Assembly (NCBI GenBank): GCA_026770705.1
Contig: JANJGN010000009.1
Location: 163,618,001-163,682,000 of the forward strand
Source: Isurus oxyrinchus
Lineage: Eukaryota
DNA: 64,000 nucleotides
Direction of reading: 5' to 3'
Below are positions 14,101 through 64,000 of the stretch, in pieces. The position numbers were made by a program, and so were the translations under genes. Below the pieces are notes generated by a model. It had not been told where the DNA came from and did no database searches. It was given only the letters and a program-made list of their open reading frames with translations. Numbering within the stretch: the first letter of the stretch is position 1; each line of letters begins with the position of its first letter.

Positions 14101-14365
14101 ATGAGGAAAAGTTGGACAGACTAGGCTTCTATCTGCTGGAGTTTAGAAGAGTAAGAGGCGAATTGATTGAAACATATAAGTTCCTGAGGAGACTTGACAG
14201 GGTGAGTGCAGAGAGGATGTTTCCTCTTGTGGGAAAATGAGGGGTCACCAATTTAGAACAGAGATTAGGTGATTTTTTTGAACTCAGAGGCTCGTGAGTC
14301 TTTGGAAATCTCTTCCTGAAAAGGTGGTGAAGGGGAGGCTTCGATTATTTTTAAGGTAGAGGTGG
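11185..14365 (+). mobile_element. Decayed CR1-clade LINE (ORF1 SGNH esterase, ORF2 APE endonuclease and RT, 3' tail), 5' end deleted
   Basis: ORF1 motifs VVRDSIVRG, CCLPGAR, VVHVSTN and DGLHLN. ORF2 motifs YLNARSI, IAITETWL, NQHGFVKG, FADDTK and QRKFTRLIPG. Many stops, frameshifts and deletions. Confidence 0.9.
12563..12688. mobile_element. 126-bp Harbinger/Tourist-type MITE inserted in the CR1 (also at 41486-41611)
   Basis: Imperfect TIRs (GGCGGGGATTTT...AAAATCCCACTG) flanked by TAA on both sides, interrupting the CR1 sequence. Confidence 0.65.
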
Positions 14366-14508
14366 AGTGCTACAAATCAGCAGTAACTTGTGGCAATTCA
14401 CGATTCATTGGCTTTTTTCTTCATCGTCAAAAGTTGCTGATGATTTTCACATTAAAAGAGGTGTTTGTTGTTCATACCCCATTATATTTTCAGTAAGTTC
14501 TAGCCCAT

Positions 14509-15110
14509 TGTTATAGAGTTGATTTTCCAGGCAACTTTTCTGGGTGGAAACATTGAACTTTATTTACAAGACAGCTGCAGCAGCTACATGTGTGTATCTA
14601 ACTCTATAACTAAAGGACAACTCCCCGTGGAGGTTCCCCATGCTGCAAATTGGTTGGTTTACACAGATCATGTTCTCTTACAACAAAGGATTATTCTTAA
14701 TGTTACAGTCCTACCTTGATCAAAACTATAATTATTACATTCCTCACCCTTTACCTTTTCTGTACATTTGTATTTACAAGGATGTTGATCTCATGACATT
14801 AAAATACTTCCACAGGTCATGAAATTATAAGCTTGGTCTTTCAAGTGGTTCCCTGTGGAACGTTTTAGTTTCATGACCTCAGATTCTCTGACAGGAACCA
14901 CAGTCTCTGCAATAACATGAGGTACCTCCTTAGGCACAGGCAGATCAGTGTCGTCCACTCCGACAGAGACATCGGGCATGACTATCCTTGGCTGTACAAT
15001 GTTAACAGGAACCACAGGTTCAACAATGGCTACAGGTGGAAAATTATTTTGTGGGGTATCTCCATTCTTTTTAAATCAATCAGGAGCTTACCGGTGATCT
15101 ACAAAGATTA
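14509..15110 (-). mobile_element. Gypsy-type LTR retrotransposon 3' remnant (pol tail, PPT, 231-bp LTR at 14509-14739)
   Basis: On the minus strand, a ...VMKLKRST pol-tail-like ORF is followed by purine tract AAAGGTAAAGGGTGAGGAA directly abutting TGTAAT...TATAACA, with an internal AATAAA. Confidence 0.7.
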
Positions 15111-15413
15111 GTAAATAAAACCAAAATATTAAGAAATCTCTGTATTCAATTTGACAACTAAATTTCAGAAATGAAAAAAATACCTCTGTTCCTGTGGGGT
15201 TTGTGGAAATTGGGACGGGGTTCCTGTTCTAACTCACCTCACAATTCATTATAAATACTAGTTCAGCTCATCATTATCCACATGTTCTAACTTTTTAACA
15301 TTCTTGTTTTCAGGATTTTATATCCTTTCAATGAAAATTAGTTTAGTTCTTTTGTTAAATATAACTGACAGAAATTCAAGTTCTCAGGGGTCAGATTTCA
15401 TCAGATGCCTTAA

Positions 15414-15456
15414 TGTGGTTTCATGACCTGGCTTCCTGCTATCTTCTTCCTCATTT
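15414..15456 (+). promoter_or_regulatory. Putative proximal promoter module of copy 1: RUNX plus ETS/PU.1 motifs
   Basis: TGTGGTTT (15414), CTTCCTG (15432) and CTTCCTCATTT (15446-15456, reverse AAATGAGGAAG) lie 100-145 nt upstream of the ATG. Motif match only. Confidence 0.45.
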
Positions 15457-15556
15457 AAATTCCTTGTATCATTTATATTAGACACATATTTCGATGTGAG
15501 AAACAAGAGCTGAGTGTCTGGAAACAAGTTCTGCCCTGATCTTTGTGAACAAAACG

Positions 15557-15593
15557 ATGTGGATTTTGATTCTCCTCATTAGTTCTCTGCCCG
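15557..15593 (+). CDS. Copy 1 exon 1, signal peptide (MWILILLISSLP)
   Basis: ATG, hydrophobic leader and phase-1 donor G|GTGAGT. This is the usual split-leader layout of IgSF genes. Confidence 0.85.
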
Positions 15594-24500: not shown

Positions 24501-26942
24501 TTCCAGGGTATTATTCACAGAATAGGGAAGTTCTCCTGGTGTCCTTGAAGCCTTTATTCCTCAACCAATACACACAAATTGGGAGCAGGAGCAGGCCACT
24601 TGGTCTTTTGAGCCTGTTAATGTCACTACAAAACAGATCATCTAGTGAATGTTTTACTGATGTTTGTGGGGCTTTATTGTGTAGGAATGAACTTCCACGT
24701 TTCCCAACATTAAAACTTTGGCTTTACTTCAAAAAAGTACTTCATAGGCTCTGAAGCACTTTGGAATATCCCAAGGTTGTGAAAGGTGATGAATCAGCAC
24801 AACTTGTTTCTTACTTTTTGAAACAAACCATTTATTAAAATACATCTGAACCAATTATCTGAGTGCAAACTGCAGGGGGGGGAGGGGGAGGGAGGAGCCA
24901 GTCCCAGCAGCAAGGTGGTCATTATAATTAAATGGTCCGAAAATCACTGGCAGGTTTGAGACATTCATGGTCAGTGGGTGAAGATTCTCATCTTTACTGC
25001 AAGCTCAGAAAACTGCCCCCAAAGTGCAGAAAGTGACCATTGCCAGTATTAGGATGTGACTGTTTAATGTGTTCACATGAAATTCATGTCAAGAATGTGT
25101 ATCTCTGGATTGCAGTCCACCAACTTGAGCCCTTACCAGGCCCACTTCTAACTCTGTCCCACCAACTCTCAGATATAGGAAAGAATGTGGAATTACCAGT
25201 AAAGATAGATCACCATCAGGTATCAGCAACCTCTCCACTTGTGACCAGAGAGGGGTAAATTACACAGAAATCAATTCTACCTGCCAGGCTTTTCCTCAAT
25301 TAATGAGGTTCCATTTGACAATGATGCTCTCTCAGTTGACTACAAGTGAAAATGAGGTGAATCTGAATGTTATTCCCTTGTGTCAACAGGACCTGAGTAT
25401 TGTTGTGAAGCTTGTACAAGAGTATCACCAACTACATATTTGACAAGTACAGATATAATTTCCACTACCAATCGAGCCACAACTTCAGATCCCGAAAATG
25501 CTGAAAGGTACAATGTTCTCATGGATTGGCATTGCTTCCATATGTGAGAGATACAATTGGCCAAAGGAGTGAAAGTTGTTCATTAATTGTAAAGTAGCTC
25601 ATCAGAATGGAAATGGTGGCTGGGTTTATATCATGCTGTTGTGTTAGCTTCTTAATGAGGCTGCATTTTTCTGTTGGAAAATACAAGCAAGGAGTGAGCT
25701 TTTCCATTGTGTTGCCGCTCAGATGGTGTTTTTTGCCTTATTCACCTTGATTACTTCACCGCTAAGGTAACCTCACAGTGTGTGAGGAGTTGTACTTGTC
25801 AAACTTACCTTGCTGCTGTCTACACTGACAGAGTGGTTGTATTTGGGCTGATGAAAAGGAAGAATTAGCGTGATATATCTGCACATCCCTTGGTTTCACT
25901 AATGAGAGACATCTTGCAACTCTGGTCCCGTTTCCATATGATTAGCCTGAGCTGTCGACAATAAGTAGCAGAAATTGTAGTCCGATGTAAACACTCAGGA
26001 ACCGGGTCTTTGAAGTTACAATGGTGATAAAGAGAAAACGCCAACTAAATGTCAAACAGAAAGAGGGACAGTTGGAAATGGGCAGCAGGTATGTCCGCAG
26101 CTGTGGAGAAAATAAACACGTTCATGGTTTGGGTGCAGACACTTCTTCAGAATTCTAGTCCACACACGAAGCGAAGCAGGTCCACTCACCCCACAGATCC
26201 CAACTGAGCTGCTGAATGTTTCCAGAATCTTCTGTTTTCCATTCATATTTCTAGCACATGCAGTGCACTTACTTTTATCCAGATTATTGTCAATGATTTA
26301 AAAAGTATTGAAAGTCTAGGGTCTGAATTTTCCGCTCGGCGGGGGTGGGGGTGGGGTAGAGCGGGAGCGAGCACGGGCAGCTGTGGACCCCATCGCCATC
26401 CACCATCGGGTTTTTGACGCCATTTTGCGCGGGCGGCCAATTTAGGCCATCCCAGCGTATTTCCCGGCTCCCGAGGATAGCGGCAGTGGGCGAGAAGCGG
26501 GGGGTGTGCACAGACAACCGGGTCCAATGGTGACCCAGCGGCCTGTTTAAATGAAGGCCTGGCAGCCTGTTCCAGCTGCTCACAATGGCCAGTGCAAAGA
26601 ATTTTCACTTACAATTCCGCTTAGCCTTACAGTTAGACATTATGGACATGCTAAAGAAATTTGCTTCGTTTGATTTTTATCTAATGATCATGAAGTTGAT
26701 AAGTAGAACTTTAGTTGATTCTTTCAGCTAAAGTCCCTTGTCTACTTTATGTTGCTGCAAAAAATTACAGTGTAAAGCGGAGAGTCATGTTTCAAAAATG
26801 AAACAGTCTCATTTCATTTAAATGGTTTGATATTTCTTCTCTTTTGCTCAGTTACATTATCTGGGATGTGATACGCTGGGTGCTCTTTACTCTCCTGGTG
26901 ATTTGTGCTGTTTCGGGCACATGGTGTACGAGAAAATCTAAG
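15557..26942 (+). CDS. Copy 1 spliced gene: CD300/pIgR-like (CMRF35-like/MDIR-like) two-Ig-domain type I receptor. Exons 15557-15593, 17453-17767, 22736-23065, 25390-25507, 26852-26942, plus uncertain cytoplasmic exon(s)
   Basis: Five GT-AG exons join in compatible phases (1,1,1,2,0) into 297 stop-free codons: MWILILLISSLPVSGALWAKDRV...CHY...KYWCRGWTRQC...DTGWYSC...ISYEPVSVPVL...YYCTASN...GNIGPEYCCEACTRVSPTT...ENAESYIIWDVIRWVLFTLLVICAVSGTWCTRKSK. Confidence 0.88.
17453..17767 (+). CDS. Copy 1 exon 2, V-type Ig domain of the CD300/pIgR/TREM class
   Basis: Acceptor ttgtctcctcag. Motifs ITIEC-H-Y, KYWC-x6-C (extra C-C' disulfide), RISVTD and DTGWYSC. Phase-1 donor G|GTACAT. Confidence 0.93.
18045..20745. 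mobile_element. Rearranged Harbinger-family fragments in intron 2; unit B copy at ~46963-49657
   Basis: 18630-20190 is clearly similar to 32720-34080 (e.g. MSQLLEL..Q/PAREHQEG..AA.LRLQG.MEES). 20570-20745 resembles the Myb first exon on the + strand. Confidence 0.7.
18855..19071 (+). mobile_element. 5'-truncated L1/Tx1-like retroelement (217 bp) with a 15-bp TSD; unit B copy at 47767-47983
   Basis: Flanked by CTAC(T/A)TCT(C/T)CTCAAC at 18840-18854 and 19072-19086. The related uninterrupted site is at ~32931-32946. The insert reads HAVSGSTVETF..W / GLGSFIQPLNHILV* plus a T-rich 3' UTR. Confidence 0.65.
22736..23065 (+). CDS. Copy 1 exon 3, C2/I-type Ig domain (FcRL/PECAM-like)
   Basis: Acceptor tttctttctttccaacag. 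Sequence EPVSVPVL...VSVSCES..GSLPIQYTWY...YYCTASN. Sequons NVS, NLT, NVT. Donor G|GTAAGT. Confidence 0.9.
25390..25507 (+). CDS. Copy 1 exon 4, Cys-containing Thr/Ser-rich stalk
   Basis: Acceptor ttattcccttgtgtcaacag. Reads GPEYCCEACTRVSPTTYLTSTDIISTTNRATTSDPENAE. Phase 1 in, phase 2 out (AG|GTACAA), matching the TM exon phase. Confidence 0.8.
26852..26942 (+). CDS. Copy 1 exon 5, transmembrane segment with Asp and Arg
   Basis: Acceptor tttcttctcttttgctcag. Reads SYIIWDVIRWVLFTLLVICAVSGTWCTRKSK, with a basic stop-transfer motif and donor AAG|GTGAGA. Confidence 0.88.
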
Positions 26943-26987
26943 GTGAGAGTTATGGACTGTATAAGAATCATTATGGGCAGTTTGCAA

Positions 26988-27912
26988 TGTTATGATGTGG
27001 CAGATGATGTGTGTCAGGCAGACCAAATCCACGAGTGAAACTTGGTCGAGCTGTCACAACGGTTTTGCAATTTATATTTATTATGAGATGCATGCACTGA
27101 ATTCAGACACCATAAGTCTACCAAACTTTTAGAGATTTAAAAAATATATCGTTAAATATATTTATTAGCAAAAGATAGATTTCAATTACATACATAAGTC
27201 TACTAATTTCTTCTATAATAACTCGTAAAATTCCTAATTAGCCTCACTCCCAGTTACACCTCCTTTAAGGCAACTGTACAAAGAATAGATATTAGGTTTC
27301 AAGCAGATCCAGCAAATTGACACAATGATCTAGACAGTGGAATTCCAAATGGCTTTCACCAGCTTCAGTTTCGTTAGACAGCAGGCTTATGCACAAATGC
27401 TGGAGGCTTCATTAAGGCTACTTCAAACACATCTGTTAGGTCTCATATGGACTTCTCCTGACACATAGCCTCATTCTCCTTTATATATGTTTCCCTCTAT
27501 TTAACATGTAAACCCTATTGTTTCAGATACCTTTGAAACTGTGTCTTCCTCACAATGTAAAAACTTTCATGTCGATACTATATATTGTCAGTAACCTTTG
27601 AGATAAAGAAACACATTCCTTCATCTTGCTTAGCTGCCTAATTGTAAAGAGACTAAAATACTTTTGAAATCCAAATCTCCCTTCATTTATCTAAAAAGGC
27701 AAATTCCCTTTACACTTTACTTGCTAAACCAGTATCCATGTTTACTCATTAGCATGTCAAATACCTAGCTTCTTTTGTTGAGTTATATCATGCCATCTAC
27801 CTGATTCCAAATGTAATTAAATCTCACACAGACAGACCCAAACACTTACCCCCATAAACCGACTCCACAATAAAGCAGAAAATATTATGAAAATTATTAT
27901 ACTTTCATGACA
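26988..27912 (-). mobile_element. Solo LTR (925 bp) in the intron after the TM exon; unit B copy at 56901-57825
   Basis: Termini TGTTATGA...TCATGACA, flanks GCAA/GTAA. Minus-strand TATATAAAG (~27480-27488) lies upstream of a minus-strand AATAAA (~27161-27166). Confidence 0.65.
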
Positions 27913-28015
27913 GTAAATTCTCCATCAATTATTTCAAAAACATTGATCACAGATATTGTCAAGAAAAACTTGCATTGATGTTAAGGTCCACAGATTGAAA
28001 CAAGGTGTTTTACAG

Positions 28016-28058
28016 ATTCTATGGGCAGAATCATCTGAGATTTGCACAAAATGCCGTA
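28016..28058 (+). CDS. Copy 1 candidate cytoplasmic exon (ILWAESSEICTKCR)
   Basis: Flanked by gtgttttacag and GTGAGT, open in phase 0, and lying in non-repeat sequence between TEs. Not otherwise validated. Confidence 0.35.
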
Positions 28059-28229
28059 GTGAGTGGGAAAAAGGACATCCCGGGTGTGAAAAAACAGCAC
28101 AGACCAAGACCCTGATTTCCCAGTTTTTACTGGTGTTCCATGTTAAAGTATATGAGCCCCACTCAGGCCCGTATTCTTATTTCCCATTTTTTACTGTTTG
28201 TCCCTTCTGGGATATTATCCGCCGGCTGC

Positions 28230-28960
28230 AATGGCAGATTTTCACACCTTATTATCCTATTCCTGGCACATCCCACCTCATTAATTATGCGTTCACTGGA
28301 AACACACCGGGTCGCTGGTGGGAAGGCCTCTGACGCGCCACCCCACCGTCACCTCAGGCCTTCATTTATCCAGACGCCCTATTTAAAGGCCGTTCCTGCA
28401 GAGAGATAGCTCTCTCTAAGGCATCAGAAACTGCTAGGAATTCATAGCTGCCAAAGGGAGGAAACATGTTGCATCCAAAATTGAGCACTGCCTCCCTCAG
28501 CCTACTGGGCACTGTGAGAGCTGCCGTGAAGTCCTCTACCCCAATTCTAGGCGAAGACCAACAAGCACAGCAACAAATCTAGCATGGGTGGTGGTGGCAG
28601 CAGTGGTCAGTGCCAATGCACTGCTAAAGAGGACAGCCACCCAGCGCTGAAAGAGGATGAATGGTCACCTTCTTTTTGCTAGGTTAAATCACTTTTCTCA
28701 TCACTCACAACTCAAAAACCCATCACACATTCACTGGGATCTCACTCAATACCAGTTCAAGGGACATCACCATTCTCCCTCTCACACACACCTTCCTCTG
28801 CCCTGCCGATCCTGTCTTCATCCATGGCACCACTTACCACCCACACGTGCCGGGTGCCCTCCTCATGTGGCCTGGCAGGCACCCTGCTTACGCTCTCTCC
28901 ATCTGTTTTCCTGCAGAACAAGCTGGATGATGTCAGGGATCTGACACTTACTGAGAATAT
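28230..28960 (+). mobile_element. Harbinger Myb/SANT-like gene fragment; unit B copy at ~58143-58873
   Basis: AWVVVAAVVSANALLKRTATQR*KRMN matches the Myb exon at 34392-34600. Confidence 0.65.
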
Positions 28961-30200
28961 AGGAGTCACGGACACTCCCTTGGAATCGCACGCAGACCCG
29001 TGGAAGCTCTTGCTGTTTGTTTAAATATTTCTTGCCATTCCATCTCATAATCATCTTTCTCCCTCTTTATTCATTTTTTGGTCATCCGCTGCTGGTTCCT
29101 AAAAAGTTCCTAATCCTCAAGCATACCATTAGTTTTCCCCCCTTTTTATACTTTAGTTGTTGATTGGATACTCTCCTTGACTGCCGTCGTTAACCATGGG
29201 TGGTTCATCCTTCTCATCAAGTCCTTCCTTTTGAGCGGGATAAATTTTTTCTGAGCGTTATGAAATATTTACTTAAATGTCTGCCACTGCTCACCCACTG
29301 ACCTTCCTGTTAGTCTATTCTCCCAGCCAACTCTTCCTTCATAACTCTGTAATTGGCCTTATTTAGGTTGAGGACACTGGTTTTAGAGACGAGCTGCTCA
29401 CCCTCAAACAGAATTTCAAATTCTACAATGTTGTGTGATCGCTATCCCCTAGAGGATCCCTAACTACACGATCTCTTATGAATCCTACCTCATTACGCAT
29501 TGCTAGATGCAAAATAGCCTGTTCCCAAGTAGGTTATGCAACATATTGCTGAAAGAAACTATCCTTGGTACACTCTACAAATTTGTCTTCCAAGTTAGCC
29601 CTGCCTATCTGATTTCTCCAGTCAATATGCAGATTAAAATAATCCATGACAATTGTAGAACCCTTCTTACATGCCTACATTATTTCCCAATTTATGCTTT
29701 GTCCTACAGTGAGCAAACTCTTTGGAGGCCCATAGATGAGTCCAACGCATGGCTCGTTCCCCTTACTAATTGTTATTTCTACCCAAACTGATTCCACATC
29801 ACGATCTATGCCAGCTATGTCACCACCGCACTGATACCTTCATTTATTAACAAAGCTACCCCACCTCCTTTTCCTTTTTGCCATTTTTTCCGGATTGTCG
29901 AATACCCTTGAATATTGAATTCCCAGTCTTGGTCACCCTGCAACCATGTCTCTGTCATGGCTATCAAGTCATATCCATATATTTCTATTTGTGCCGTCAA
30001 CTCATCTGCCTGCATTCAGATAACATGCCTTAAGCTTGGATTGTTTACCATTATTGCTCATTCTGGTTCTCATTTCTGCTGCACTCTTCTGCTCCTTGTC
30101 CTGCCCCTTCTCATCATACTTTGATTACCATTCGCCTCTTCACTACCCTGTACTTCTGCTCTCTCATTTCCTTTAGATGTTTTAAACTTCCCTTCAATTG
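28960..30200 (-). mobile_element. CR1 LINE fragment (endonuclease region); unit B copy at ~58873-60113
   Basis: ADELTAQIEIYGYDLIAMTETWLQGDQDWEFNIQGY...GKGGGVALLI. Confidence 0.85.
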
Positions 30201-30720
30201 TCCCTGTTACTATGATCCCATGTAACCCATCCATAATAGAAACATTCCATAGTTTAATCTAATCTTCCAAAATAATCGATACAAGAAAAGGAAGCGAGGA
30301 AATGAAGGCAGAATCTAACAGAGCACCAGGGATGATTGTTTTTCAACAAGAACACAAGGAGACGTAAAATTATACAGACTGCAACAGGAGACTGAGATAC
30401 AGACCCAAGAGAATTGTTACTGGAAGCAGCAATTGCACTGTATAAAATATATTTAATAAAGTAGCCACAGCAATCAATTTCTACCCAAAACGCCAGTTGC
30501 AGGGGAACATTAGTTACCCATGAGAAAATGGTGTTACATCTCTTCAAGAGGGGCACAACTGATAACTTTTCCCAGCACACATGCAATGGGTGAGGAGTGT
30601 GATGTTGCCACAGCTCCAGCTCATCACAAGCTTTGCCTCGATTTGTCGGCATAGCCAGAATTCTGTTCACATGTAAAATAATGCATCGTTCTCAGTCTCA
30701 ATTAATCTGGTGATTTTCAG

Positions 30721-30875
30721 TTCCAGACACTCAACGAATCAGATCCTCACAGCTTGACCTAAGAGGGAAAATGAAGATTCCGGGGTTACATCTACATTGA
30801 TGGAATTTTTCATCCTGACAAAATATTCATTATTCGTCGAGCTTTGAATTTCTTTTAATAATTCTACAGAATAAA
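30721..30875 (+). CDS. Copy 1 candidate terminal exon (FQTLNESDPHSLT* in phase 0, or IPDTQRIRSSQLDLRGKMKIPGLHLH* in phase 1) followed by AATAAA
   Basis: Acceptor tgattttcag in unique sequence, and AATAAA at 30870-30875. The reading frame depends on whether 28016-28058 is used. Confidence 0.35.
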
Positions 30876-31096
30876 AATCGATTTTCTCATCAAATAATTT
30901 TGACCATTAAATTAGTGGAGCAATCAAAAAGCAAAATGATGGCTGCGAACTTCAAATTGTATATCTACATCCTGACAATAATTTCTCTGTTTGCTGCCTT
31001 AGTGTCTACACAACTTTATTTCTTGTTTTAAGACTATCAAATTCTTTAAGAAATAAGCAACTTGAAAAGTTCATTTATTGGAAACCAATCGCTTCA

Positions 31097-34000
31097 TATT
31101 ATGATGCAGCTGAGCTAAATGCTGAGCGGTTCAAATCCAGGAGGGAAACTTGAACCAACTGTCATAACTAACTGTTGCAAATTGTATGATGAAGGTGCAG
31201 GCTTTAAATTCAGTAGTAATAAGACGACTGAGTCTCAACAGGTTTTTATAAAACTAAATTAAACATTTATTAATACAAGAAAGATTGTGAGCACATGCAT
31301 ATGTTGACAAAATTACTACTATAATGTCTACAAAAATCCCCTAATTAATCTGGCTCCAAGTTATACCTCCGTTAAGGCATCAGTAAAACACATGGATTTA
31401 AACAGACCCTGGGCAAAGCTCACTCTGGACAGTCACATTCAAATTGAGTTTCTTTCAGCTCTGGGTCTTTGCAGACAGCGGCTTGAGGCTTACGGACTGG
31501 AGGCTTTAGTTCTTAGAATCGCTCTCCTTTTTACCAACAGCCTTCTAATCCTTTTTACATATTTTTCTCTTTGAATGCAATTTTCATTCTACCACTATTT
31601 CATTTGAAATTTTAACACTTCAAATAATAAGACACTTTCATGCGACCCACTTTATTAGTAATCCTTGGGAAAAATAAACAAACACACAGTTTCTGAGCTT
31701 CACCTGGTTAGGTGTAATATTTCACACCATCTCTGAACCCAAGGTAGGGGAGTTAGTTTAAAGAAAAAATGCAAATTGCCCCCATATTTACCTAAGTAAC
31801 ATTTCAAACCTACTCCTTTTCTATACATCAAAGCCTCTAGACAAGCTGGCTTTAATCCAATTAGGACACACACACACACAGAGGGCAGGATTTTCCGAGC
31901 CCGCTGGCAGCAGGTGTAATAAGTGGCATGTGTGGATAATATGGTGTGAGCTGCTTCACAATGGCAGCATGAAGGCAGGTTGTGATCGTCCGCTCAGCCC
32001 ACCTACAGCGGGTCGTGCTTCCCGCTATCGGTCAGCGGGGAGCTAATTGTTATACATCAGCATGTAATTAAAAGGCCATCCTGCCAGGCTCTTGGAACCC
32101 GGCCGTATCCTCTGTCCACGTTAGCGGGAAAGCACGCCGACGTGATTCACAACAGCACACAGGCAATTTGTACCTGGTGGCCTTGACTCTGGGGGAAATG
32201 GGGTGAGTGAGCAGCAGCGTTCTCCACAGCTTGCCTGTTGTTTACAGGCTTCAGGGATGCCTGACCCCGGATGTGACTGCTGAGAGGGGGGTCTCCGGGG
32301 GGGGTAAGAGCTGGCCAGCCTTGAAATGCTGAGGGCAAGGTGTCTAGTGGCAAGTGCTGGCTGCCTTGGAGGTGGATACTGAGGGGGAGATGTCCAGGGT
32401 CATGTGATGACCAACCTCAGAGGCGAATGGTGTCGGTGGCTCCATGCTCAGGACCATCTCAGATGCAGCCATGAAACCTTAGACGCATCTGGTGCTGTGT
32501 CCTCCTTCAGCAACTCAGCCCTTTCAGGAGCTGGTGCGCAGTATTACTGGTCACAGATGCTGGTGTGATGGGGGTCAGTCCCACCTTAAAGATGCTGAGA
32601 GCTCACAGTGAGAATGAGAGAACTCTGTGGGGCCTGCCCACTCCATTCTGGCAGCAATGCCCAGCACCGCCGAGGTGTGGGCATCAGTAATGTGTCCAGG
32701 GAGTGTGAGGCTGGACCATCACTGTTATCTGAAGGTTGCACAGAGCACAGGGAAAAGGCCCTGGACTCATACACCTGCCCTTTATCTTGCACAGGAAGGT
32801 TTCACATCTGAGTGACAAGAACACTGCTCATCAGAACAAGGAGCCACAGGCAGGGTGACGTTCTTCGGAGTTTACCAACAATAGTGAACAATATGTACAT
32901 GTGACCAACACCCGTACCCAGGCTGTGCAACTACATTTCCCTAACTTTCCTAACTCTATCACTACATCTTGCTGCTCCCCGGACATCCACAGCAGAGGTG
33001 GAGCTAACCTGCTGCATGTGACGCCCTGTCTGTGATGACACTGGTGGGCGTCCTCTGGAGGGCTGAGACTTGGTGGGCCCCGGCCTGCTTTCGGGGTCCT
33101 GCTGTGTGGTAGTGGCCCCCTCCTCGGCCTGGGGGGCTGGAGCTGCTGAGATCCTAGGAAGAGGGGAGTCGGGTTGGCCAGTCACTCCCAGAACCTCCTG
33201 AGTCGATGGCCCCGGAGTGTGTACCTGCTGCTCCTCCTCCCTATCGGTGTCTGATGGCCCCTGGCTGACTCTGAGAGCGGAGGGTGTAGCTGGAGTGAGA
33301 TTGAGCTAATTGTAACCCCTCTCTCATATACACTGTTGGAGGGTAAATATAGCATCAGCGATGGAGTTCACCATGCACAGCAGCACAGGAGTGACGTCCT
33401 GGGCCAAGGTCTCCATGGCAGCTGCCATCCTGCCAGTGTTGACCTCGGTGTATTGCAGCGCCGGAGTTATCACCTCAACCTGAAGATAGACGGACCCCTC
33501 CATCATGCCTTGCAATCTGAGGAGTGCAGCGGGCATCCCTTCCTGATGTTCCCGAGCTTGCCTTTGCAATTCCAGTAACTGTGACATGACCGAGCCCAGA
33601 GGCTGTCATCTGACTCGGACTCAGCAACATTGTGGCCTCCAGCATCCTCTGAGGGGCAGGGGACCTGGGAAGTCCCTGCCTCCACCTGCTGTAGATCAAA
33701 CAGTGCGATGTGCTCCCAGATTGTGATCCTCAGGCTACTCTAAAGCTAGGTCCCACTGAGGTGTGTGTCTCTGCGCTGGCAGAGGCTGTGGGTGAGCTCT
33801 GTGACGGAACTTCAGGGAGAGTGCCTTCCGATTCCTCTTCAGAGGTTTCTTCAGGAGACCCTGGGTCATGGACTCTGTCGGCTGCTTCCCAGATGTGTCT
33901 GTGAAAGCAAGGGGAGATAATGAGTGCATGGCAGTGGCCTGTGATAAAGGACACATCACTCACAGCATGGTTATCTGATGGGTGTTGCACCGCTGGACCC

Positions 34001-34988
34001 TCACTTGATAGGGCAGTGCCAACCTTACCATCAGCACAGGACCGGCCCCGATCATTGCCGGTCAGCTGGATGGCTCTGCTTTCGAATTCTGTCAGAACTT
34101 TGATCTCCGGCATCCCTCCACCTGTCTCTGACCTTTCCCCCCTGTTGTGTGCCTGTTTGTCCTGTGTGGATATGGATGGGGACAGTGTGTCAGGATGCCT
34201 GCAGGGGACAGATGATAAGTATGCCTGGCCTGTGTGGGTGGGGAGTGGTCCCGTGGATAGGGTGAGAACAATGAAGGTGTATGTGAACAGGTGAATGGTG
34301 ACGTCCCATGCACTGGCAGTGAGTGAGGGCCCTGTAGATGTGTGATGGGTTTGTGAGTGTGTGAATTGGGTTTGTGAAAAGAGTGACTTACCCTGGAGGA
34401 ACGGAGGAGATCATTCATCCTTTTGCGGTACTGGGTGACTGTCCTCCTCTGCAGGACGTTCACACTGACCACCGCTGCCTCCACCTCCCAAGCCGGGTTG
34501 GGTACTTTGCTGCCCACCCTGCGGTCAGAGCGTGGGGTAGAGCACATGCCGGTGCCCCTCCACGGCATCCAGCAGTCGCTTGAGGGACCCATCAATGAAG
34601 CAGGGGTCTGCAGTCTTTTTTCCCTCTGCTGGCCATGTCTCCCAGGCAGGGGTGGTGAGCTGGTGGCGATGAGCGCTTTGATGGTAGCTGCCTTTTAAAG
34701 ATGGTGGCCAGCGTGATGTAACAGCGGGGTGATGGTGCGTGGGCGAATGAGAGCCCGCTTGCCATGGAAACGGTGTGTTTCACGGGGGTGAATAAATAAT
34801 GAGCCGGGTTCAGGATGATATGGTGTGAAAACCCGTCATCTTCGTCGGCAGGTAGGACTCCATTTTACCCACCCGCTACCGCACTTAGTGCAATTCTGGG
34901 AAAATTCTGCCCACAGATACAGACACCACTAAACTCTCATTTAAAATAATTTCCAATAACATTATAAACATTAATATAATGCTTCACA
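31097..34988 (-). mobile_element. Related solo LTR, split by a Harbinger insertion; unit B copy starts at 61010
   Basis: Colinear similarity to 26988-27912 (e.g. caaatcca..gag.gaaacttg; tttatta). CTTCA direct repeat at 31092-31096 and 34989-34993. Confidence 0.55.
31883..34912 (-). mobile_element. PIF/Harbinger-type DNA transposon (3.0 kb) with a decayed intron-containing Myb/SANT-like gene
   Basis: 14-bp TIRs GGGCAGGATTTTCC / GGAAAATTCTGCCC. Minus-strand exons read ...AWEVEAAVVSVNVLQRRTVTQYRKRMNDLLRSSR|gtaagt (exon ends 34392) and cag|DKQAHNRGERSETGGGMPEIKVLTEFE (from 34161). No intact transposase recognised. Confidence 0.8.
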
Positions 34989-36050: not shown

Positions 36051-36444
36051 GTGGTCTCTACTGGATTCTACTGGACATCAGAAATCCAGTAGGGATTCCA
36101 GTTGCTTCAGCTAAATAGAGCTGGAACCACAGCACCTGTTCCCAATTGGACTAGGAGTCAGAGAGGGACAATGCAAGAACTGGGGCATAAACTCTCATTC
36201 AGTGGGTGGTGCAGTCTGAGGAGGACCTGAGAAGGCTTCGAGAGAAAGGTGGGAAAGTGGGAGAAAGGGAGACAGAGTCAGAAGCATCCGTTACATTTTC
36301 CCCAGAGTTGGTCACTCTGGCAGGATCAGCATCAGCCTCAGGGAAGGAGGCAACAGTGGAGGAGACGACAGTGGCGGAGGTGGAGGTGGCGATAGCAGCG
36401 GAACTGAAGGTTGCAGTGAAGTCAGCAACAACAGTGGAGAAGGA

Positions 36445-36892
36445 TGAGGTGGAGCTGGTGACTGAGGAGGCTGAGGTGGAGGCAGTGACTGAGGAGGCTG
36501 AGGTGGAGCTGGTGACTGAGGAGGCTGAGGTGGAGGCAGTGACTGAGGAGGCTGAGGTGGACGTGGTGACTGAGGAGGCTGAGGTGGAGGCAGTGACTGA
36601 GGAGGCTGAGGTGGACGTGGTGACTGAGGAGGCTGAGGTGGAGGCAGTGACTGAGGAGGCTGAGGAAGAGGCAGTGACTGAGGAGGCTCAGGTGGAGGTG
36701 GTGGCTGAGGAGACTGAGGTGGAGGTGATGACTGAGGAGGCTGAGGCGGAGGCAGTGACTGAGGAGGTTGAGGTAGAGGTGGTGACTGAGGAGGTTGAGG
36801 TGGAGGCAGTGACTGATGAGGTTGAGGTGGAGGCAGTGACTGAGGAGGTTGAGGTGGAGGCAGTGACTGAGGAGGCTGAGGTGGAGGTGGTT
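36445..36892. repeat. 27-bp minisatellite array 3 (~16-17 units)
   Basis: Same unit, with GAC/CTG variants. Confidence 0.95.
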
Positions 36893-38105: not shown

Positions 38106-38615
38106 NNNNNNNNNNNNNNNNNNNNNNNNNNNNNNNNNNNNNNNNNNNNNNNNNNNNNNNNNNNNNNNNNNNNNNNNNNNNNNNNNNNNNNNNNNNNNNN
38201 NNNNNNNNNNNNNNNNNNNNNNNNNNNNNNNNNNNNNNNNNNNNNNNNNNNNNNNNNNNNNNNNNNNNNNNNNNNNNNNNNNNNNNNNNNNNNNNNNNNN
38301 NNNNNNNNNNNNNNNNNNNNNNNNNNNNNNNNNNNNNNNNNNNNNNNNNNNNNNNNNNNNNNNNNNNNNNNNNNNNNNNNNNNNNNNNNNNNNNNNNNNN
38401 NNNNNNNNNNNNNNNNNNNNNNNNNNNNNNNNNNNNNNNNNNNNNNNNNNNNNNNNNNNNNNNNNNNNNNNNNNNNNNNNNNNNNNNNNNNNNNNNNNNN
38501 NNNNNNNNNNNNNNNNNNNNNNNNNNNNNNNNNNNNNNNNNNNNNNNNNNNNNNNNNNNNNNNNNNNNNNNNNNNNNNNNNNNNNNNNNNNNNNNNNNNN
38601 NNNNNNNNNNNNNNN
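38106..38615. other. Assembly gap (run of N)
   Basis: ~500 consecutive N. True gap size unknown. Confidence 0.99.
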
Positions 38616-44510: not shown

Positions 44511-47500
44511 GTGAGTGACAGCCAGAGCTGGATGTTCCGATATTCTGAGTTGGTTTAACTCTCGTGCGCTGGTTATACAGCAGATGTTTAAATATTTGGA
44601 GACATGCAAAGGCACAAGAGAGGTCTTGGGCACAGTGGGTAGTGTCTCTGTATCTGAGCCAGAAGCTCTGTCTTTGAGCCCCACTCCTGTTCTTGTTGAG
44701 AATGGAAGGCGCGTTCTAACCAGGACCAACAGATTGATTATCAAACTGAAAATCTTCCAACAGACCGAAGGCTGGTGGTAAGAGGTTGAGAGATCCCAGT
44801 CCAACATGTTTGATGTGGAGTGGTGCCGCTCATTCTGTTGTCTCCGGAGGTTGTGACCTGTTCCAGGGAAAACAAGCTTTGGAATGCAAAAGTAAACATG
44901 TGCTTTGTCTGCCGCATCCGTCTCTAGATGTGGGAAGTCTCCTAAGTCTAAAGGCACAAAATAGTCAGCAAAACCAAATGAGTAATAATTGTGAAGTATT
45001 TTATTACCTTGTGAATTAACTATCACACCATGGGAATAGTTAACAAATAAACTGAACTGCATTATTAATTATGAATGATAAGTAAAGGAGAATTAAATTT
45101 TCAGAAAGCTATGCAAGCAACATTTTGAAAATGAAAACCTGTTTTAATTGATAATTTTCAATATAATCTGATGTCCAGTATACACTGAAGACTGCAGCGG
45201 TAATAATCCCACAAATAAAACATGTCCCAAGTTTGCAAATATTTCTGTTTTTTAAAGTACAGTTGATGAAATATTGTTTTATGAGGCTCTCTCAGTGACA
45301 CTGTTCCTCACTGGTAGATGGTTGGTCTACATCACTCTTCTCATAAGTAGCCTTTTCTTGTTCATTCTTTAACTTTAAGAAACTAGATTTTGCTCATCAC
45401 TCAGTATTGCCACCTCTCCATCATTTCGATGAATCTATTTTATAACACACAATGTTAAACTCCCAGACCCATCTGCTCTTAACCACCTCCCCAAAATATT
45501 TTGTGCCTCTAGCTGATCAATTTTATGCAGAATACTTGATGTACTTATGGACAGGAAACTGAATCATGTTTCTGTCTGTTTGGCAATCTTCTTCTTTTCA
45601 ATCCTTCCTCTTTCTGATCTGATCTCTTTCCCATTCCCTTTACATCTGTAACTTTCCCTGTATCTTTTTTCTTTTCTTCACTTCTCTCAAGCCATTTAAT
45701 TATTTTCAATCTCACTTTGGTTATTTTAGTGCAAACTCTTTCCCCACAGCATGAGTTTCTCTCCCAGCAAGGCCATTGGTCTCATGAATATTCAAGCAAA
45801 GGCATCCAAATCCCTACCTCAGGAATCCATCCATACTGTAAGGCCACCTATCACACAACCTCGCAAACCTTCAAGACCTTCAAATCCTACCTTTGGACAT
45901 CCCTAACTCATTCAAGATCTGAACAACCCCTCCTGCAAGGACACAAACCTCCTCTGCACCTCACCACCTCAGATCAGAGCAGGGAACTGTTGGCTCCTAT
46001 GACCCCCTTCACACTGCTCCCCAACTTACTGCAAATCAGGCCTGTCAATCAGACTGGTTTCTGGCTGTGGAACCTCCTGATGATGTCATACGCAGTCTAG
46101 GGTGAAACCCCAAAATATGGGAACCCCAAAACCCCAATTTCCAGGTTCCCTCACTCTACCAGCCCCTGCCAATATGTCAAGAAAATGTCCCAATTATCTC
46201 ATGAGCGTATCATTGTCTGAGACGTGCTTTGGAATACAGTGAGGCTCTGATAAGTGTCTATATGAATGATTACTCTCATCACAAACTTGATGGAATTTAA
46301 CTCATTAAAATGCATCTGTTTGAATTAAGCAGTTATTTCCAGTTCAATTCCTGAAATGTTGTCTCCTCAGTTTCAGGTGCATTGTGGGCAAAAGAGAGAG
46401 TAACAGGAGTTGTGGGAAGAGCGATCACAATAGAATGTCACTATGATGCGTGGTGGTACAAGTCACATATAAAATATTGGTGTCTTGGCTGGACTCGCCA
46501 GTGTAAAGTTGTAGCATCGACAAATTGGCGAAAGGGAAGAATATCGGTCACAGATAACAAGTCACAAGGATTATTTATTGTTACTATGGAGAATCTTGGC
46601 TCATGGGATACAGGATGGTACAGCTGTGGTATTGACAAAACAGGCCAAGATCCAATGTTTGCTGTCTGGCTACAAATATCTTACGGTACATTTCTTACTG
46701 ATTTTCTTTATTATTCTCGACTGAAATGTCTGATCAATGTTTTATCTGGGAGGAAACATGACAGCTCCGATATCCCGAGGCTCCACAACAATGCAGAGTC
46801 TTAAAGGTAAAGGGCAGTGGTCGGGAAATCCGACTCATGTTACCCAAACCCAATTCATGGCCTGTCCGACATGTCAGAGTTGAACTTTACAAGTGAACTA
46901 AACAGAAATTGAGAAGTTGTTTTGATGGTAAAAGAAGCCTCTTTATTAATTGTTGAGACATTGGGCTGGATATTCAGCCTCAAAGCGGGTAGGGGGAATT
47001 CGGAAAATTCCCCGCTCGGCCTTGGAAGAAAGTGCCCACAAAGGTGGGATTCCCATTGCTGGGAGCTGTGCCCGGGCTGCAGTCTGGCCAGCCACACCAG
47101 GAAGAAATGCAGAGGCAGCCACAGGGGCTGCCGGCTGCGGAGACGGGCTGTTTAAAAGGCCCCTCCTTAATGCCCTTGGACTTTGTAACAGCTAAAATCA
47201 AAACATAAAGGCCCTTCACCCCTCACCCCTCACAGCCCACAAAGAGGGTGGGTGTAAGGGGAAAATTTGTCATGAGGGGGCTTGGAGGTGGGTGGAAGTG
47301 TACAGCTTGAAGTCAGGAACATGAGGGGCTATAAGGCGTGGGTATAGGGATAGAGGGGGAACGAAGGGCCAAGCGGGTTGGATGTGACTTGACATAGCGG
47401 GCATGAGATGCACCTTTTGAACTTAGCTGTTAAAAGATCCCCTCATGAAGACCAGTGTTTACAGCTCCTCTGAGGGGCTTTGGACTACGACTCATTCAAA

Positions 47501-50500
47501 ACCTGGCCCGAGTCCATGAAAATTGCAGAGGAGTAGGACGTCACTTTGGTCTGAAGGCTGCACAAAGCACAGGGTAGAGGCCCTGGACTGAGACACCTGC
47601 CTTTATCTTGTATAGAAAGTGTTCACATGTGAGTGACATGAACATTGCTTATCAAAACAAGCAGCGATAGGCAGGGAGACATTCTTTGGAGTTTATTGAC
47701 AATAATGAACAGTATGTACAAGTGATTAACACCCATGCCCAGGACGTGAAACTACATCTCCTCAACCACGAGGTGTCTGGCGGCACCGGCGAGACCTTCC
47801 GTGCTCGGTCGGTGACCACGGGGGTTGGGGTCCTTTATCCAGCCTCTTAATCACATTTTGGTTTGATGTTGTAAGTTTCCTTTAAATCCTGTCTTTGGTT
47901 TTGCAGTGACCCTAACTTAGGGGCTGCGTTTTATATTATCCCTCATTTTGTTAATTTAGTTTATTGGGTTGGCTTTAAAAGAGCTACATCTTCTCAACTT
48001 TCCTAATCCTCCCGCTACATCTTGGTGCTCTGCAGACATCCACAGTGGAGGTAAAGACAGTCTGCTGACTGCTATGCTCTGTCTGTGATAACTTTGGCGG
48101 GCGTCCTCTGGAGGCCTGAGGCCCGGAGGGCCCCGGCTTCCTTTCGAGGTCCTACTGTGTGGCATTAGCACCCTCCTTGTCCTGTGGACTGGGAGCTGTC
48201 AAGGTCACAGTAAGAGGGGAGTTACCAGGATGAATGGCCCCGGAGGGTACACATGTTGATCCTTCTCGCTATGGGTACCCAATGGCCATTGGCTGAATCC
48301 TTGAGGAGCAGGTGTAGCTGGAGTGAGATCGAGCTGCCTGCACCCCTCTCGCATACACACTGTCAGGGGCCAACTATACATCAGCAATGGAGTTCAGCCC
48401 CGCAGCAGTGTAGGAACGATGCCCTGGACCAACGTCTCCATGGCAGCTGCCATCCTACCAGTGTTGACCTCGGTGCATTGACATGCCGGCGCTATCACCT
48501 CAGAGTGCAGGCGGACGGACTCCTCCATTGTGCCTTGCAATCTGAGGGGTGCAGCAGATATCCCTTCCTGATGTTCCCGCGTTGGCCTTTCCAGCTCCAG
48601 CAACTGTGACATGACCAAATCCAGAAACGCGTCACCTGACTCGACCTCAGCAAATTTATGGCCTCCAGCTGCCCACTGAGTGCCGGACACCTGGGAAGCC
48701 CCTGCCACTGCCAGCTGTGGATCAGGCAGTGCAATTTGCTCACCAGCTGTGACCCTGAGTCTACTCTAAAGCTAGATCTCACCGAGGGGTGTGCCTCTGC
48801 GCTGGTGGAGGGTGTGAGTGAGCGCTGTGATGGTACATCAAGGAGGGTCCCTCCAGGTTCCTCTTCAGAGATTTCTTTGGGGATTACTTGGTGTCCCTGG
48901 GTCTCCATCGGCTGTTACCCAGATGAGCGTGTGGAAGCAAGTGGAAATATTTTGTGCATGGCAGTGGCCTGTGAAACAGGACACATCACTCACAGCATGG
49001 TTGTCTGATGGATGTTGCACTGCTGGACCCTCACTTGGCTGAGCACCGCAGACCTCACCGTCAGCACAGGATTGGTCCAGGCCGTTGCCGTCCAGCTGGA
49101 TGGCTCTGTTTACAAAGTACTAGTACTGTTCAGGAACATGATGTTCATGTTTTCATACATGTCGCTGAATTTGTCAGTCACATTTACGCCTCTATTATCA
49201 ACCAAAGAGCGGGATTGTCCCCGATTTGCACTAAGTGCGTTAGTGGGCGGGGAAATCGATGTTTTACCCACCGGCCACAATGGGGGGTTTTCAGGCCGCA
49301 TCGTCCCAAACCCAATGCATTAGTTATGCATTCCCGGGAAACACACCATTTCCATGGTGAGTGGGATCTCATTCACCCCAAACACCATCACTTCACTGCT
49401 TCATCAGGCCCAGCACCGTATGTAAAGTCCAGCCTCGTGCACACATCTCAGTGTTTCCAACCCAGGACCACTGCAGGGAAGATATCCCCAAGAGGCAAAA
49501 GGACTGTAGCTCCCAGGTTTAGTGAGCTGTCACTGCAACACATTGTGTACACTGTGGGGGCCCTGCTGTGATGTCCTCTACTCCCACTCTGGCTGCAGTA
49601 TGGACAGCGCTGTGACCAACCAGGCCTGGGAGGCGGGGGCAGCAGTGGTATACCCACTGAATTTTATTAAGTTAACCCTCACTGTCAGATAATGTAGACA
49701 GTATGAAAAGTGTGGATGAGAAACCCTTAGAAACTGTCCTTGCTGGATGGAAACAAATACTGGAGAGATTGGAAATTTCTAAATGAAATGAGTGGATGCC
49801 TGATTGTTTTAGAGAATGAAATGCAGGTACAACAAATTTTTTAGGGATCTGAGGAGAGGGCTATCTTGCAATATGATGAAGTATAGAATATTGAGATTTT
49901 TAATTCAATTTGTTTCACACTTTTTGGTCACCATATTAACTGAAAATTTTATTTAAATGAGAGAAGGTCATCACCTAATCGTTTACTAATTGTGTTTAAT
50001 TGTATGCAGTGGTGGCATTAATTGGTGATTCACTTGTGCACCTATAAACAGATGCAGACTGAAACTGCGGGTGGTGGATTTGATTAGATTCACACAGTAA
50101 ACAGCACTTTAAAACAGTTCCACAAGTCTTAACCTATCTAACCTCAGAGCTAATCTTTCTATTTTCCGTTCAGCAACGAACACTGTAGATTTAAAAAGCT
50201 ATAGAAGTCCAATAATTTTACCACACAGTGCTTTCACATTGGGGTGTCCACTGACAGCAACTGGGTCTTCAGATCTGGGCCTTGTTCACACTGTCTCCTG
50301 GGAATTCTGACCAGCTACCCTGCTGTCTTCAGGGAGATCTGGCCAACCATCCTGCTGTGTTCTGGGAGATCTAAGCAGCTACCCCCTCACATAGGCTTCA
50401 GTATTCCCTTAAATGTGTTTCTTCTCTTTCATCTCTCTTTGTCGTACCCAGTCTGTTCAGAAATGCTTTTTTCCCAGGATTGATTAAATCAATCTTTACT

Positions 50501-61796: not shown

Positions 61797-64000
61797 GGGC
61801 AGGATTTTCCGAGCCCGCTGGCAGCAGGTGTAATAAGTGGCATGTGTGGATAATATGGTGTGAGCTGCTTCACAATGGCAGCATGAAGGCAGGTTGTGAT
61901 CGTCCGCTCAGCCCACCTACAGCGGGTCGTGCTTCCCGCTATCGGTCAGCGGGGAGCTAATTGTTATACATCAGCATGTAATTAAAAGGCCATCCTGCCA
62001 GGCTCTTGGAACCCGGCCGTATCCTCTGTCCACGTTAGCGGGAAAGCACGCCGACGTGATTCACAACAGCACACAGGCAATTTGTACCTGGTGGCCTTGA
62101 CTCTGGGGGAAATGGGGTGAGTGAGCAGCAGCGTTCTCCACAGCTTGCCTGTTGTTTACAGGCTTCAGGGATGCCTGACCCCGGATGTGACTGCTGAGAG
62201 GGGGGTCTCCGGGGGGGGTAAGTGCTGGCCAGCCTTGAAATGCTGAGGGCAAGGTGTCTAGTGGCAAGTGCTGGCTGCCTTGGAGGTGGATACTGAGGGG
62301 GAGATGTCCAGGGTCATGTGATGACCAACCTCAGAGGCGAATGGTGTCGGTGGCTCCATGCTCAGGACCATCTCAGATGCAGCCATTAAACTTAAGACAC
62401 ATCTGGTGCTGTGTCCTCCTTCAGCACCTCAGCCCATTCAGGAGCTGGTGCGCAGTATCACTGGTCACAGATGCTGGTGTGATGGGGGTCAGTCCCACCT
62501 TAAAGATGCTGAGAGCTCACAGAGAGAATGAGAGAACTCTGTGGGGCCTGCCCACTCCATTCTGGCAGCAATGCCCAGCTCCGCCGAGGTGCGGGCATCA
62601 GTAATGTGTCCAGGGAGTGTGAGGCTGGACCATCACTGTTATCTGAAGGTTGCACAGAGCACAGGGAAAAGGCCCTGGACTCATACACCTGCCCTTTATC
62701 TTGCACAGGAAGGTTTCACATCTGAGTGACAAGAACACTGCTCATCAGAACAAGGAGCCACAGGCAGGGTGACGTTCTTAGGAGTTTACTGACAATAGTG
62801 AACAATATGTACATGTGACCAACACCCGTACCCAGGCTGTGCAACTACATTTCCCTAACTTTCCTAACCCTGCCACTACATCTTGCTGCTCCCCGGACAT
62901 CCACAGCAGAGGTGGAGCTAACCTGCTGATTGTGACGCCCTGTCTGTGATGACACTGGTGGGCGTCCTCTGGAGGGCTGAGACTTGGTGGGCCCCGGCCT
63001 GCTTTCGGGGTCCTGCTGTGTGGTAGTGGCCCCCTCCTCGGCCTGGGGGGCTGGAGCTGCCGAGATCCTAGGAAGAGGGGAGTCGGGTTGGCCAGTCACT
63101 CCCAGAACCTCCTGAGTCGATGGCCCCGGAGTGTGTACCTGCTGCTCCTCCTCCCTATCGGTGTCTGAGTGCCCCAGGCTGACTCGGAGAGTGGAGGATG
63201 TAGCTGGAGTGAGATTGAGCTAATTGTAACCCCTCTCTCATACACACTGTTGGAGGCCAAATATAGCATCAGCGATGGAGTAAACCATGCACAGGAGTGA
63301 CGTCCTGGGCCAAGGTCTCCATGGCAGCTGCCATCCTGCCAGTGTTGACCTCAGTGTATTGCAGCACCGGAGTTATCACATCAGCCTGAAGATAGACAGA
63401 CCCCTCCATCATGCCTTGCAATCTGAGGAGTGCAGCGGGCATCCCTTCCTGATGTTCCCGAGCTTGCCTTTGCAATTCCAGTAACTGTGACATGACCGAG
63501 CCCAGAGGCTGTCATCTGACTCGGACTCAGCAACATTGTGGCCTCCAGCAGTCCTCTGAGGGGCAGGGGACCTGGGAAGTCCCTGCCTCCACCTGCTGTA
63601 GATCAAACAGTGCGATGTGCTCCCAGATTGTGATCCTCAGGCTACTCTAAAGCTAGGTCCCACTGAGGTGTGTGTCTCTGCGCTGGCAGAGGCTGTGGGT
63701 GAGCTCTGTGACAGAACTTCAGGGAGAGTGCCTTCCGATTCCTCTTCAGAGGTTTCTTCAGGAGACCCTGGGTCATGGACTCTGTCGGCTGCTTCCCAGA
63801 TGTGTCTGTGAAAGCAAGGGGAGATAATGAGTGCATGGCAGTGGCCTGTGATAAAGGACACATCACTCACAGCATGGTTATCTGATGGGTGTTGCACTGC
63901 TGGACCCTCACTTGATAGGGCAGTGCCAACCTTACCATCAGCACAGGACTGGCCCCGATCATTGCCGGTCAGCTGGATGGCTCTGCTTTCGAATTCTGTC
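61797..64000 (-). mobile_element. Harbinger-type element, unit B copy (truncated by the window end)
   Basis: Left TIR GGGCAGGATTTTCC at 61797. Homologous to 31883-34092. Confidence 0.8.

Follow-up and report, generated by a model that had tools for sequence, protein, structure and literature searches.

CD300 proteins of mammals (CMRF35-like molecules) have a V domain only, and paired activating and inhibitory multigene families are typical of them. Positive selection and gene conversion occur in NITR, KIR and similar families, and hypervariable V domains in tandem families of innate receptors are well known. In cartilaginous fishes, the clearnose skate has the MDIR family, the original paper on which is said to be that of Cannon et al. 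2006. A passage of PMC3031540 describes the skate MDIRs as multigene activating and inhibitory receptors with V domains like those of CD300, TREM/TLT and pIgR, and it also names the NITRs as multigene families. Here we analyse a stretch of 64,000 nucleotides (nt) of Isurus oxyrinchus (GenBank assembly GCA_026770705.1, contig JANJGN010000009.1, positions 163,618,001 to 163,682,000 of the forward strand), which we call the window and in which self-BLAST reveals a tandem repeat of about 29 kb. Each of its two units, A and B, carries one copy of an elasmobranch CD300/pIgR-like (MDIR-type) receptor gene; the two copies are tandem neighbours and both are intact. We are concerned with the V exon, by which the two copies differ most.

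The V exon matches the Pfam V-set family (PF07686) with 38.6 bits in copy A and 36.0 bits in copy B, for a cut-off of 26. Among solved structures, the closest are pIgR (E=1e-37, over several domains), CLM-1/CD300 (8e-17) and TREM2 (3e-6), NKp44 being found as well, while the antigen receptors are far weaker (T-cell receptor or antibody, 2e-4 or weaker). Single pIgR domains match the V exon at 5e-8 to 8e-10, the best relatives being D1 and D5; equivalents of the complementarity-determining regions CDR1, CDR2 and CDR3 can be mapped. The V domain has the cysteines of the pIgR/CD300 type, C22 and C85 plus C37 and C44, which vary little or not at all across the aligned family, and its motifs KYWC...C and D.G.Y.C are supported by the alignments to pIgR D1-D5 and CLM-1; both the canonical disulfide and a second one are predicted from these sequences. 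The second cysteine pair (KYWC...C) is shared with the mammalian CD300/CMRF35-like molecules, from which the shark gene differs by an extra C2 domain, placed after the V domain and before the stalk. We rejected pIgR proper as the identity of the gene: each unit has one V and one C2 exon and not at least two V domains, whereas a pIgR lacks C2 and contains from two to five V-like domains. A search of representatives returned 2,120 matches at E<=0.001, the best of them 56-68% identical in the V domain. Names were looked up for 20 of the best 150 matches: all 20 are sharks or rays, their automatic names are "CMRF35-like molecule", "polymeric immunoglobulin receptor-like" and "uncharacterized", and the name MDIR is absent among these 20. 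This elasmobranch family is already annotated automatically. The full-length relatives have a leader, a V domain, a C2 domain and a transmembrane (TM) segment of like type. In our two copies the protein encoded by the TM exon is identical, with an Asp and an Arg close to where the helix begins, a charged segment which would fit an adaptor-coupled activating receptor. The skate MDIRs are the nearest described family, likened to our genes by their description: they are a multigene family of cartilaginous fish with a CD300/pIgR-like V domain, and here the relatives are elasmobranch and the TM segment is charged.

Each unit holds one gene on the + strand, made of leader, V, C2, stalk and TM exons (Table 1). 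In both copies all five exons are open and the AG/GT splice sites are kept; the exons were each searched separately, and tblastn with six relatives confirmed the V, C2 and TM exons. A sequence-only reading of this DNA had counted 24 differences between the V exons of the two copies, over 315 nt. We recovered this number, with no indel. The 17 changed codons divide, as it had stated, into 14 with a replacement (in seven of these at least two bases are changed) and 3 that are purely silent. Its counts for the leader (0/37), C2 (5/330), stalk (1/118) and TM (1/91) exons were reproduced too, as were those for the adjacent introns (2 differences in 110 nt upstream, 4 in 120 nt downstream), and the framework C22 and C85, KYWC and DTGWYSC are indeed unchanged. 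At the protein level, the identity between the copies is 0.87 in V and 0.96 in C2.

We compared these numbers with the divergence of the whole repeat. The MAFFT alignment of its two main blocks has 512 substitutions in 22,880 shared columns (2.24%); outside the V exon 488 of 22,565 aligned bases differ between the units (2.16%), and in non-coding sequence 481 of 21,989 (2.19%). None of the 21,937 windows of 315 nt which do not overlap the V exon reaches 24 differences, the maximum being 22. At all four sizes considered, the richest window of the repeat lies in the 3' part of this exon, with 10 differences in 33 nt (next best 8), 16 in 77 nt (next best 11), 18 in 150 nt (next best 14) and 25 in 315 nt (next best 22). 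Its densest segment, 17718-17750 in copy A, holds 10 differences (permutation P=0.003), while codons 1-73 resemble the background: the proportions of changed silent (pS) and replacement (pN) sites are there 0.042 and 0.035. No part of the repeat of about 29 kb diverges faster than the V exon, and the acceleration is real. What exceeds the background is limited to a hypervariable patch of 77 nt, which takes in the E-F loop, the end of the F strand with the CDR3 equivalent and the G strand, and to one triplet in the CDR1-equivalent loop (Table 1). The replacement divergence of the V exon, 19 differences for 246 sites, is 0.077 against 0.0219 in non-coding sequence, that is 3.5 times higher; 0.17% of the windows of the same size (246 nt) reach 19 differences and no window of 63 nt reaches 13. 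For the silent sites of the V exon, 4.9% of the windows of the same size match the observed divergence.

The differences are moreover grouped. Tandem runs, three of them triplets and three doublets, account for 15 of the 24 changed bases. When each run is counted as a single event, tandem runs make up 6 of the 15 events in the V exon and 37 of the 447 events outside (Fisher P=0.0012). Adjacency exceeds chance when the test is stratified by patch (P=0.00065), in the 5' part of the exon alone (P=0.0013) and in the hypervariable patch alone (P=0.047). Three of the runs span codon borders, at codons 26/27, 88/89 and 98/99, and the silent changes of codons 26 and 98 are the first bases of such border-crossing runs; in codon 38 the change of the third base is silent in its context. 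Counted by hand, there is one purely silent event, in codon 90. By events, the replacement class is at about three times the background and the silent class is at the background, a contrast which rests on this single silent event and is not significant. This means that the verdict on selection depends on the mutational model, and the A/B pair alone cannot settle it.

We located the 14 changed residues by alignment to human pIgR D1 and with the landmarks given in a passage of PMC4786434 (CDR1 at Tyr24-Arg34, the centre of CDR2 at Glu53, CDR3 at Asn97 and Arg99-Leu101). Position 27 falls in CDR1, and positions 86, 88, 89 and 92 fall at the end of the F strand and in CDR3; positions 97 and 99 are in the G strand, 74, 76 and 78 in the E-F loop, 38 at the end of the C strand, 45 in the C' strand, 54 before the D strand and 8 in the A strand. 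The loops to which the sequence-only reading had assigned the changes were right, but about a third of the changes are in loops equivalent to CDRs. The variability of these positions was measured in a family set, obtained from the best 150 representatives: they gave 298 local matches, of which 118 cover the domain, 51 of these are at least 50% identical, and 48 remain without duplicates. In these 48 V domains the entropy averages 2.23 bits at the changed positions and 1.02 bits at the 90 unchanged ones (Mann-Whitney P=1.5e-5); 11 of the 14 former and 16 of the 90 latter belong to the top quartile. The single change in a conserved column is A86G, where copy B has the near-invariant Gly of the family. 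As a separate observation, copy B gains three Trp codons, Q27W (46450-46452), G78W (46604-46606) and K99W (46666-46668), each of which requires two base changes; Trp thereby reaches 9 of the 104 residues of its V domain, and stands at positions 27, 78 and 99 in 2, 0 and 1 of the 48 family domains, respectively.

We propose that clustered multi-nucleotide changes entered the V exon and were kept by positive selection at exposed positions which are hypervariable in the family, a reading to which we give about half of our confidence. The input would consist of clustered multi-nucleotide events, either tandem mutations or very short conversion patches (micro-conversion) from family members. Such an input would hit silent and replacement sites equally per site, and silent and replacement divergence could be equal because the input is clustered and multi-nucleotide. 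A filter would then have left the framework untouched and admitted changes, all but one, at positions variable in the family. Finally, the changes would have been retained by positive selection, diversifying or directional, on exposed positions of the V domain; we take selection as the most likely cause of retention because the replacement divergence is 3.5 times the non-coding one. Relaxed constraint, or pseudogenisation of copy B, was rejected as a full explanation: constraint relaxed alone is insufficient since the replacement divergence exceeds the non-coding level and the exons are intact. The counts, where they fall, their clustering and the family context are shown by the data. That selection acted, in which direction the letters changed and what kind of mutation supplied them are matters that we infer, and diversifying selection on the V exon is plausible.

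A number of observations weigh against this reading, and we gather them here. The sequence-only reading had taken the mostly non-synonymous character of the changes as evidence of selection, an argument which disappears once sites are counted. By explicit Nei-Gojobori (NG86) counting, S is 66.2, N 245.8, Sd 5 and Nd 19 in the V exon; pS is then 0.076 and pN 0.077, with a ratio of 1.02 (Fisher P=1) and no sign of selection at the level of codons. As replacement sites form about three quarters of the total, 19 against 5 is the outcome expected of unselected change. The expectation of a ratio of replacement to silent rates (dN/dS, or omega) above 1, tested on the A/B pair, fails as well, Biopython giving for the V exon 1.18 (NG86), 0.92 (LWL85) and 0.98 (maximum likelihood). 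The same holds inside the patch, where codons 74-99 have pS=0.196 and pN=0.207, a ratio of 1.06, and where the silent sites themselves are raised (3 changes for 15.3 sites, binomial P=0.004; 1.6% of the windows of the same size reach this level). Both site classes are raised, the replacement class more clearly, and the excess is not specific to replacements. The margin of the V exon over other windows is not large either, because the divergence along the repeat is overdispersed (variance/mean 3.05), because non-coding patches come close to it (22 differences at 24579-24896 and 20 in the upstream intron at 17030-17346), and because, with each tandem run taken as one event, the V exon is surpassed by the adjacent upstream intron, which then ranks first with 18 events, and its own 15 events are matched by 1.8% of the other windows. 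The non-coding patches at 16990-17330, 18800-18950 and 24380-24900 are 92.5-93.7% identical between the units, against 92.4% for the V exon, and they have tandem runs too. In the 630 pairs formed by 36 V-C2 units, the identity is 0.623 in V and 0.620 in C2; V and C2 being equally diverged over these pairs, V is not intrinsically faster at depth. Copy A has derived-looking states of its own: among the 48 family domains, A86 occurs once and V89 never. The exposure of the changed residues is a prediction from the alignment to human pIgR D1. Finally, the changes at positions 74, 76 and 78 weigh against a purely ligand-binding reading, as the E-F loop of pIgR contacts the next domain according to a passage of PMC4786434, and the equivalent of CDR2 is unchanged. 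The suggestion of diversifying selection on the ligand-binding domain therefore stands in part: the raised replacement rate and the changes at variable columns speak for it, but the pN/pS of 1.02, the E-F changes and the unchanged CDR2 do not.

A serious rival is micro-conversion among many units. In its full form, which we find possible but doubtful, the ancestry of the copies is a mosaic produced by gene conversion: the backbone would have been homogenised between units, the V patches would come from diverged members of the family or be left over from them, the divergence of the patch would predate that of the backbone (2.2%), and selection on this pair would not be needed. The equal silent and replacement divergence of the patch speaks for it, and so does the range of divergence between the units, from 0.2% to 5.8% per 500 nt, as expected of conversion tracts. 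Close tandem paralogs of other species have V/C2 identities of 0.83/0.96 (Mustelus), 0.75/0.96 (Hemiscyllium) and 0.64/0.92 (Rhinoraja). This greater divergence of V than of C2 fits either a faster change of V after duplication or a homogenised backbone with V spared; taken with the equality of V and C2 over all pairs, the near-identical C2 next to a differing V fits a concerted evolution of the backbone. Family members are numerous. Read contigs from four runs and two organisms (69-106 short contigs per run on 1.2 kb, 88-100% identical; the letters given here are those of the best-supported rows, to the exclusion of 83 others) show that the family is large, although such contigs cannot show the absence of a letter. 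Some states of copy B recur elsewhere: X5 and X8 have its letter at 46486, and part of X1 has it at 46451 and 46604; a loose end of X1 carries its codon 97 (GCT); other genomes have at codon 38 a third state, CAT, whose third base is that of copy B; and its "CGIDK" recurs in Mustelus paralogs. Third states are seen in contigs of other genomes at 46485 and 46666.

The same contigs provide evidence on the other side. Nine of the 24 sites show the copy A letter in other genomes (best-supported rows), and at five sites (46507, 46534, 46592, 46598 and 46648) every covering contig listed has the letter of copy A, that of copy B being in no listed contig of the four runs. At the polarisable sites, the changes appear to have occurred mostly on the lineage of copy B; on the whole both lineages seem to have changed, copy B more in the E-F region. 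None of the 48 family domains has the G76, W78 or Q92 of copy B, or the V89 of copy A. With derived-looking states in both copies, a single tract into one copy is insufficient. The differences form islands of 1-3 nt between identical stretches of at least 50 nt, which is finer than usual conversion tracts. The window contains no donor and no third V exon (tblastn with the V exon of copy A and with six relatives found no further V or C2 exon in it), and what is shared by contigs of other genomes is limited to single codon states.

Clustered input without positive selection would also be provided by a neutral local hot patch of mutation, due to error-prone repair or to another process giving tandem mutations, in which purifying selection removed framework hits only; it would have struck the V exon by chance or owing to the local sequence context. 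The pN/pS of 1 and the non-coding hot patches with tandem runs mentioned above speak for it. Outside the V exon, moreover, 41 adjacent pairs are observed for a local expectation of about 20, that is about twice as many; there the tandem runs show a weak trend to be confined to hot patches (P=0.10), 12 of the 37 being isolated. In the patch of the upstream intron transitions dominate over transversions by 16:4, and other genomes carry there the letters of copy A. This explanation is nevertheless improbable in our opinion: the changes in the V exon strongly avoid conserved columns, and the V-exon patch exceeds all the non-coding patches at each scale. Its transitions and transversions (10:14) are similar to those of the rest of the repeat (258:230, P=0.30), and its share of CpG is no different from that of the rest of the repeat. 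Hot-spot motifs of AID are not enriched in it either, WRC/GYW holding 2 of the 10 changed G:C positions and 33 of the 120 unchanged ones (P=1).

The pattern could also have a technical origin, A and B being two haplotypes of one locus placed in tandem, or copy B having received polishing errors from reads of other members. An assembly gap of 510 N at 38106-38615 lies near the start of unit B, a family with so many copies invites mis-mapping, several letters of copy B are in none of the listed contigs of the four runs, and no public run contains more than 0.38 of the sampled words. We hold this origin to be decidedly unlikely: the changes disturb neither the frame nor the splicing signals and spare all conserved residues, as random polishing errors would not, and a contig of 100 nt (X5) matches copy B exactly over 46351-46449, including its letter at 46396. 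The pattern would stand even if the copies were allelic.

According to passages of PMC8781386 and PMC5931798, tandem substitutions make up "nearly 60%" of the AID-induced substitutions in sharks. The high share of tandem changes in our pair (15/24) resembles this somatic hypermutation, from which the pair differs in that the gene is germline and non-rearranging, that tandem runs are found in non-coding sequence too and that there is no enrichment in hot spots. A hypermutation-like origin is suggested solely by the share of tandem changes, the hot-spot motifs giving no support. It seems very improbable to us that the V exon of one copy was the target of a burst of tandem multi-nucleotide substitutions in the germ line, by a hypermutation-like or error-prone-repair process; if true, such a burst would seed diversity in innate V-domain families and echo the tandem-rich somatic hypermutation of sharks.

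The two copies document how a recently duplicated CD300/pIgR-like pair diverges in a cartilaginous fish, namely by clustered tandem changes at positions of V that are hypervariable in the family, with the rest near-identical. The pair resembles NITR, KIR and similar families by its tandem arrangement, conserved framework and variable loops; it differs from them by an omega of 1.0 and by changes which include the E-F loop, at the opposite pole from the CDR loops. The pattern of the V exon is ordinary for such receptor families, and what is added to them is modest: the signature of tandem runs, and caution about codon counts. The case is indeed a cautionary one, as a striking count of replacement against silent codons becomes an omega of 1 after site counting, and tandem events make dN/dS per nucleotide unreliable. 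If the whole array is alike, it would be a good system in which to compare tandem mutation and micro-conversion as sources of innate-receptor diversity at the base of the jawed vertebrates.

Table 1. Features of the two repeat units, of the two gene copies and of the V exon of copy B (positions in the window)
Feature	Start	End	Strand	Remarks
Repeat unit A	9950	34093	+	left edge within minisatellite, right edge approximate
Repeat unit B	36445	64000	+	extends past the end of the window; N gap inside
Gene A, leader exon	15557	15593	+	MWILILLISSLP, phase 1; ATG, then GTGAGT donor; start as in relatives P0053, P0067 and P0001
Gene A, V exon	17453	17767	+	frame from 17455; Pfam V-set E=1.3e-9; AG/GT kept
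Gene A, C2 exon	22736	23065	+	Pfam Ig_3, Ig_2 and Ig_C17orf99 above cut-off; tblastn match with relatives
Gene A, stalk exon	25390	25507	+	Ser/Thr-rich; one of two open AG..GT candidates of 118 nt
Gene A, TM exon	26852	26942	+	YIIWDVIRWVLFTLLVICAVSGTWCTRKSK; Asp and Arg near start; tblastn match with P0064 and P0072
Gene B, leader exon	44474	44510	+	identical to leader of copy A
Gene B, V exon	46371	46685	+	exon under study
Gene B, C2 exon	52652	52981	+	5 differences from copy A
Gene B, stalk exon	55303	55420	+	1 difference from copy A (P>R)
Gene B, TM exon	56765	56855	+	1 silent difference from copy A
Tandem triplet change	46450	46452	+	spans codons 26/27; CDR1-equivalent loop, Q>W
Hypervariable patch, 77 nt	46592	46668	+	copy A 17674-17750; from E-F loop to G strand; contains 16 of the 24 V-exon differences

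In the exons other than V, four of the five differences in C2 are replacements (G>S, Q>P, P>S and E>V), as is the sole difference in the stalk. These exons likewise show no sign of purifying selection over this short time. The alternative candidate for the stalk exon of gene A, at 23988-24105 (118 nt, open, AG..GT), is not rich in Ser/Thr.

By self-BLAST, the blocks 9950-11187, 11185-22570 and 22569-34093 of unit A are 95.5-97.9% identical to unit B. Two stretches are nearly identical between the units, 27000-28000 (3 differences in 1000 nt) and 33500-34000 (2 in 500 nt), which suggests a recent homogenisation between them. A GC-rich minisatellite is found at 8434-10440 and at 36437-36891, with self-matches offset by multiples of 27 nt. 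Each unit also contains two examples, 77% identical, of a GC-rich element of about 1.1 kb (19072-20199 and 32931-34082 in unit A, 47984-49111 and 62845-63989 in unit B), which is probably a dispersed repeat. Finally, a row of open reading frames lies on the + strand at 12106-14076 and in the matching part of unit B; we take them to resemble an endonuclease/reverse transcriptase of the long interspersed nuclear element (LINE) type, in broken pieces.

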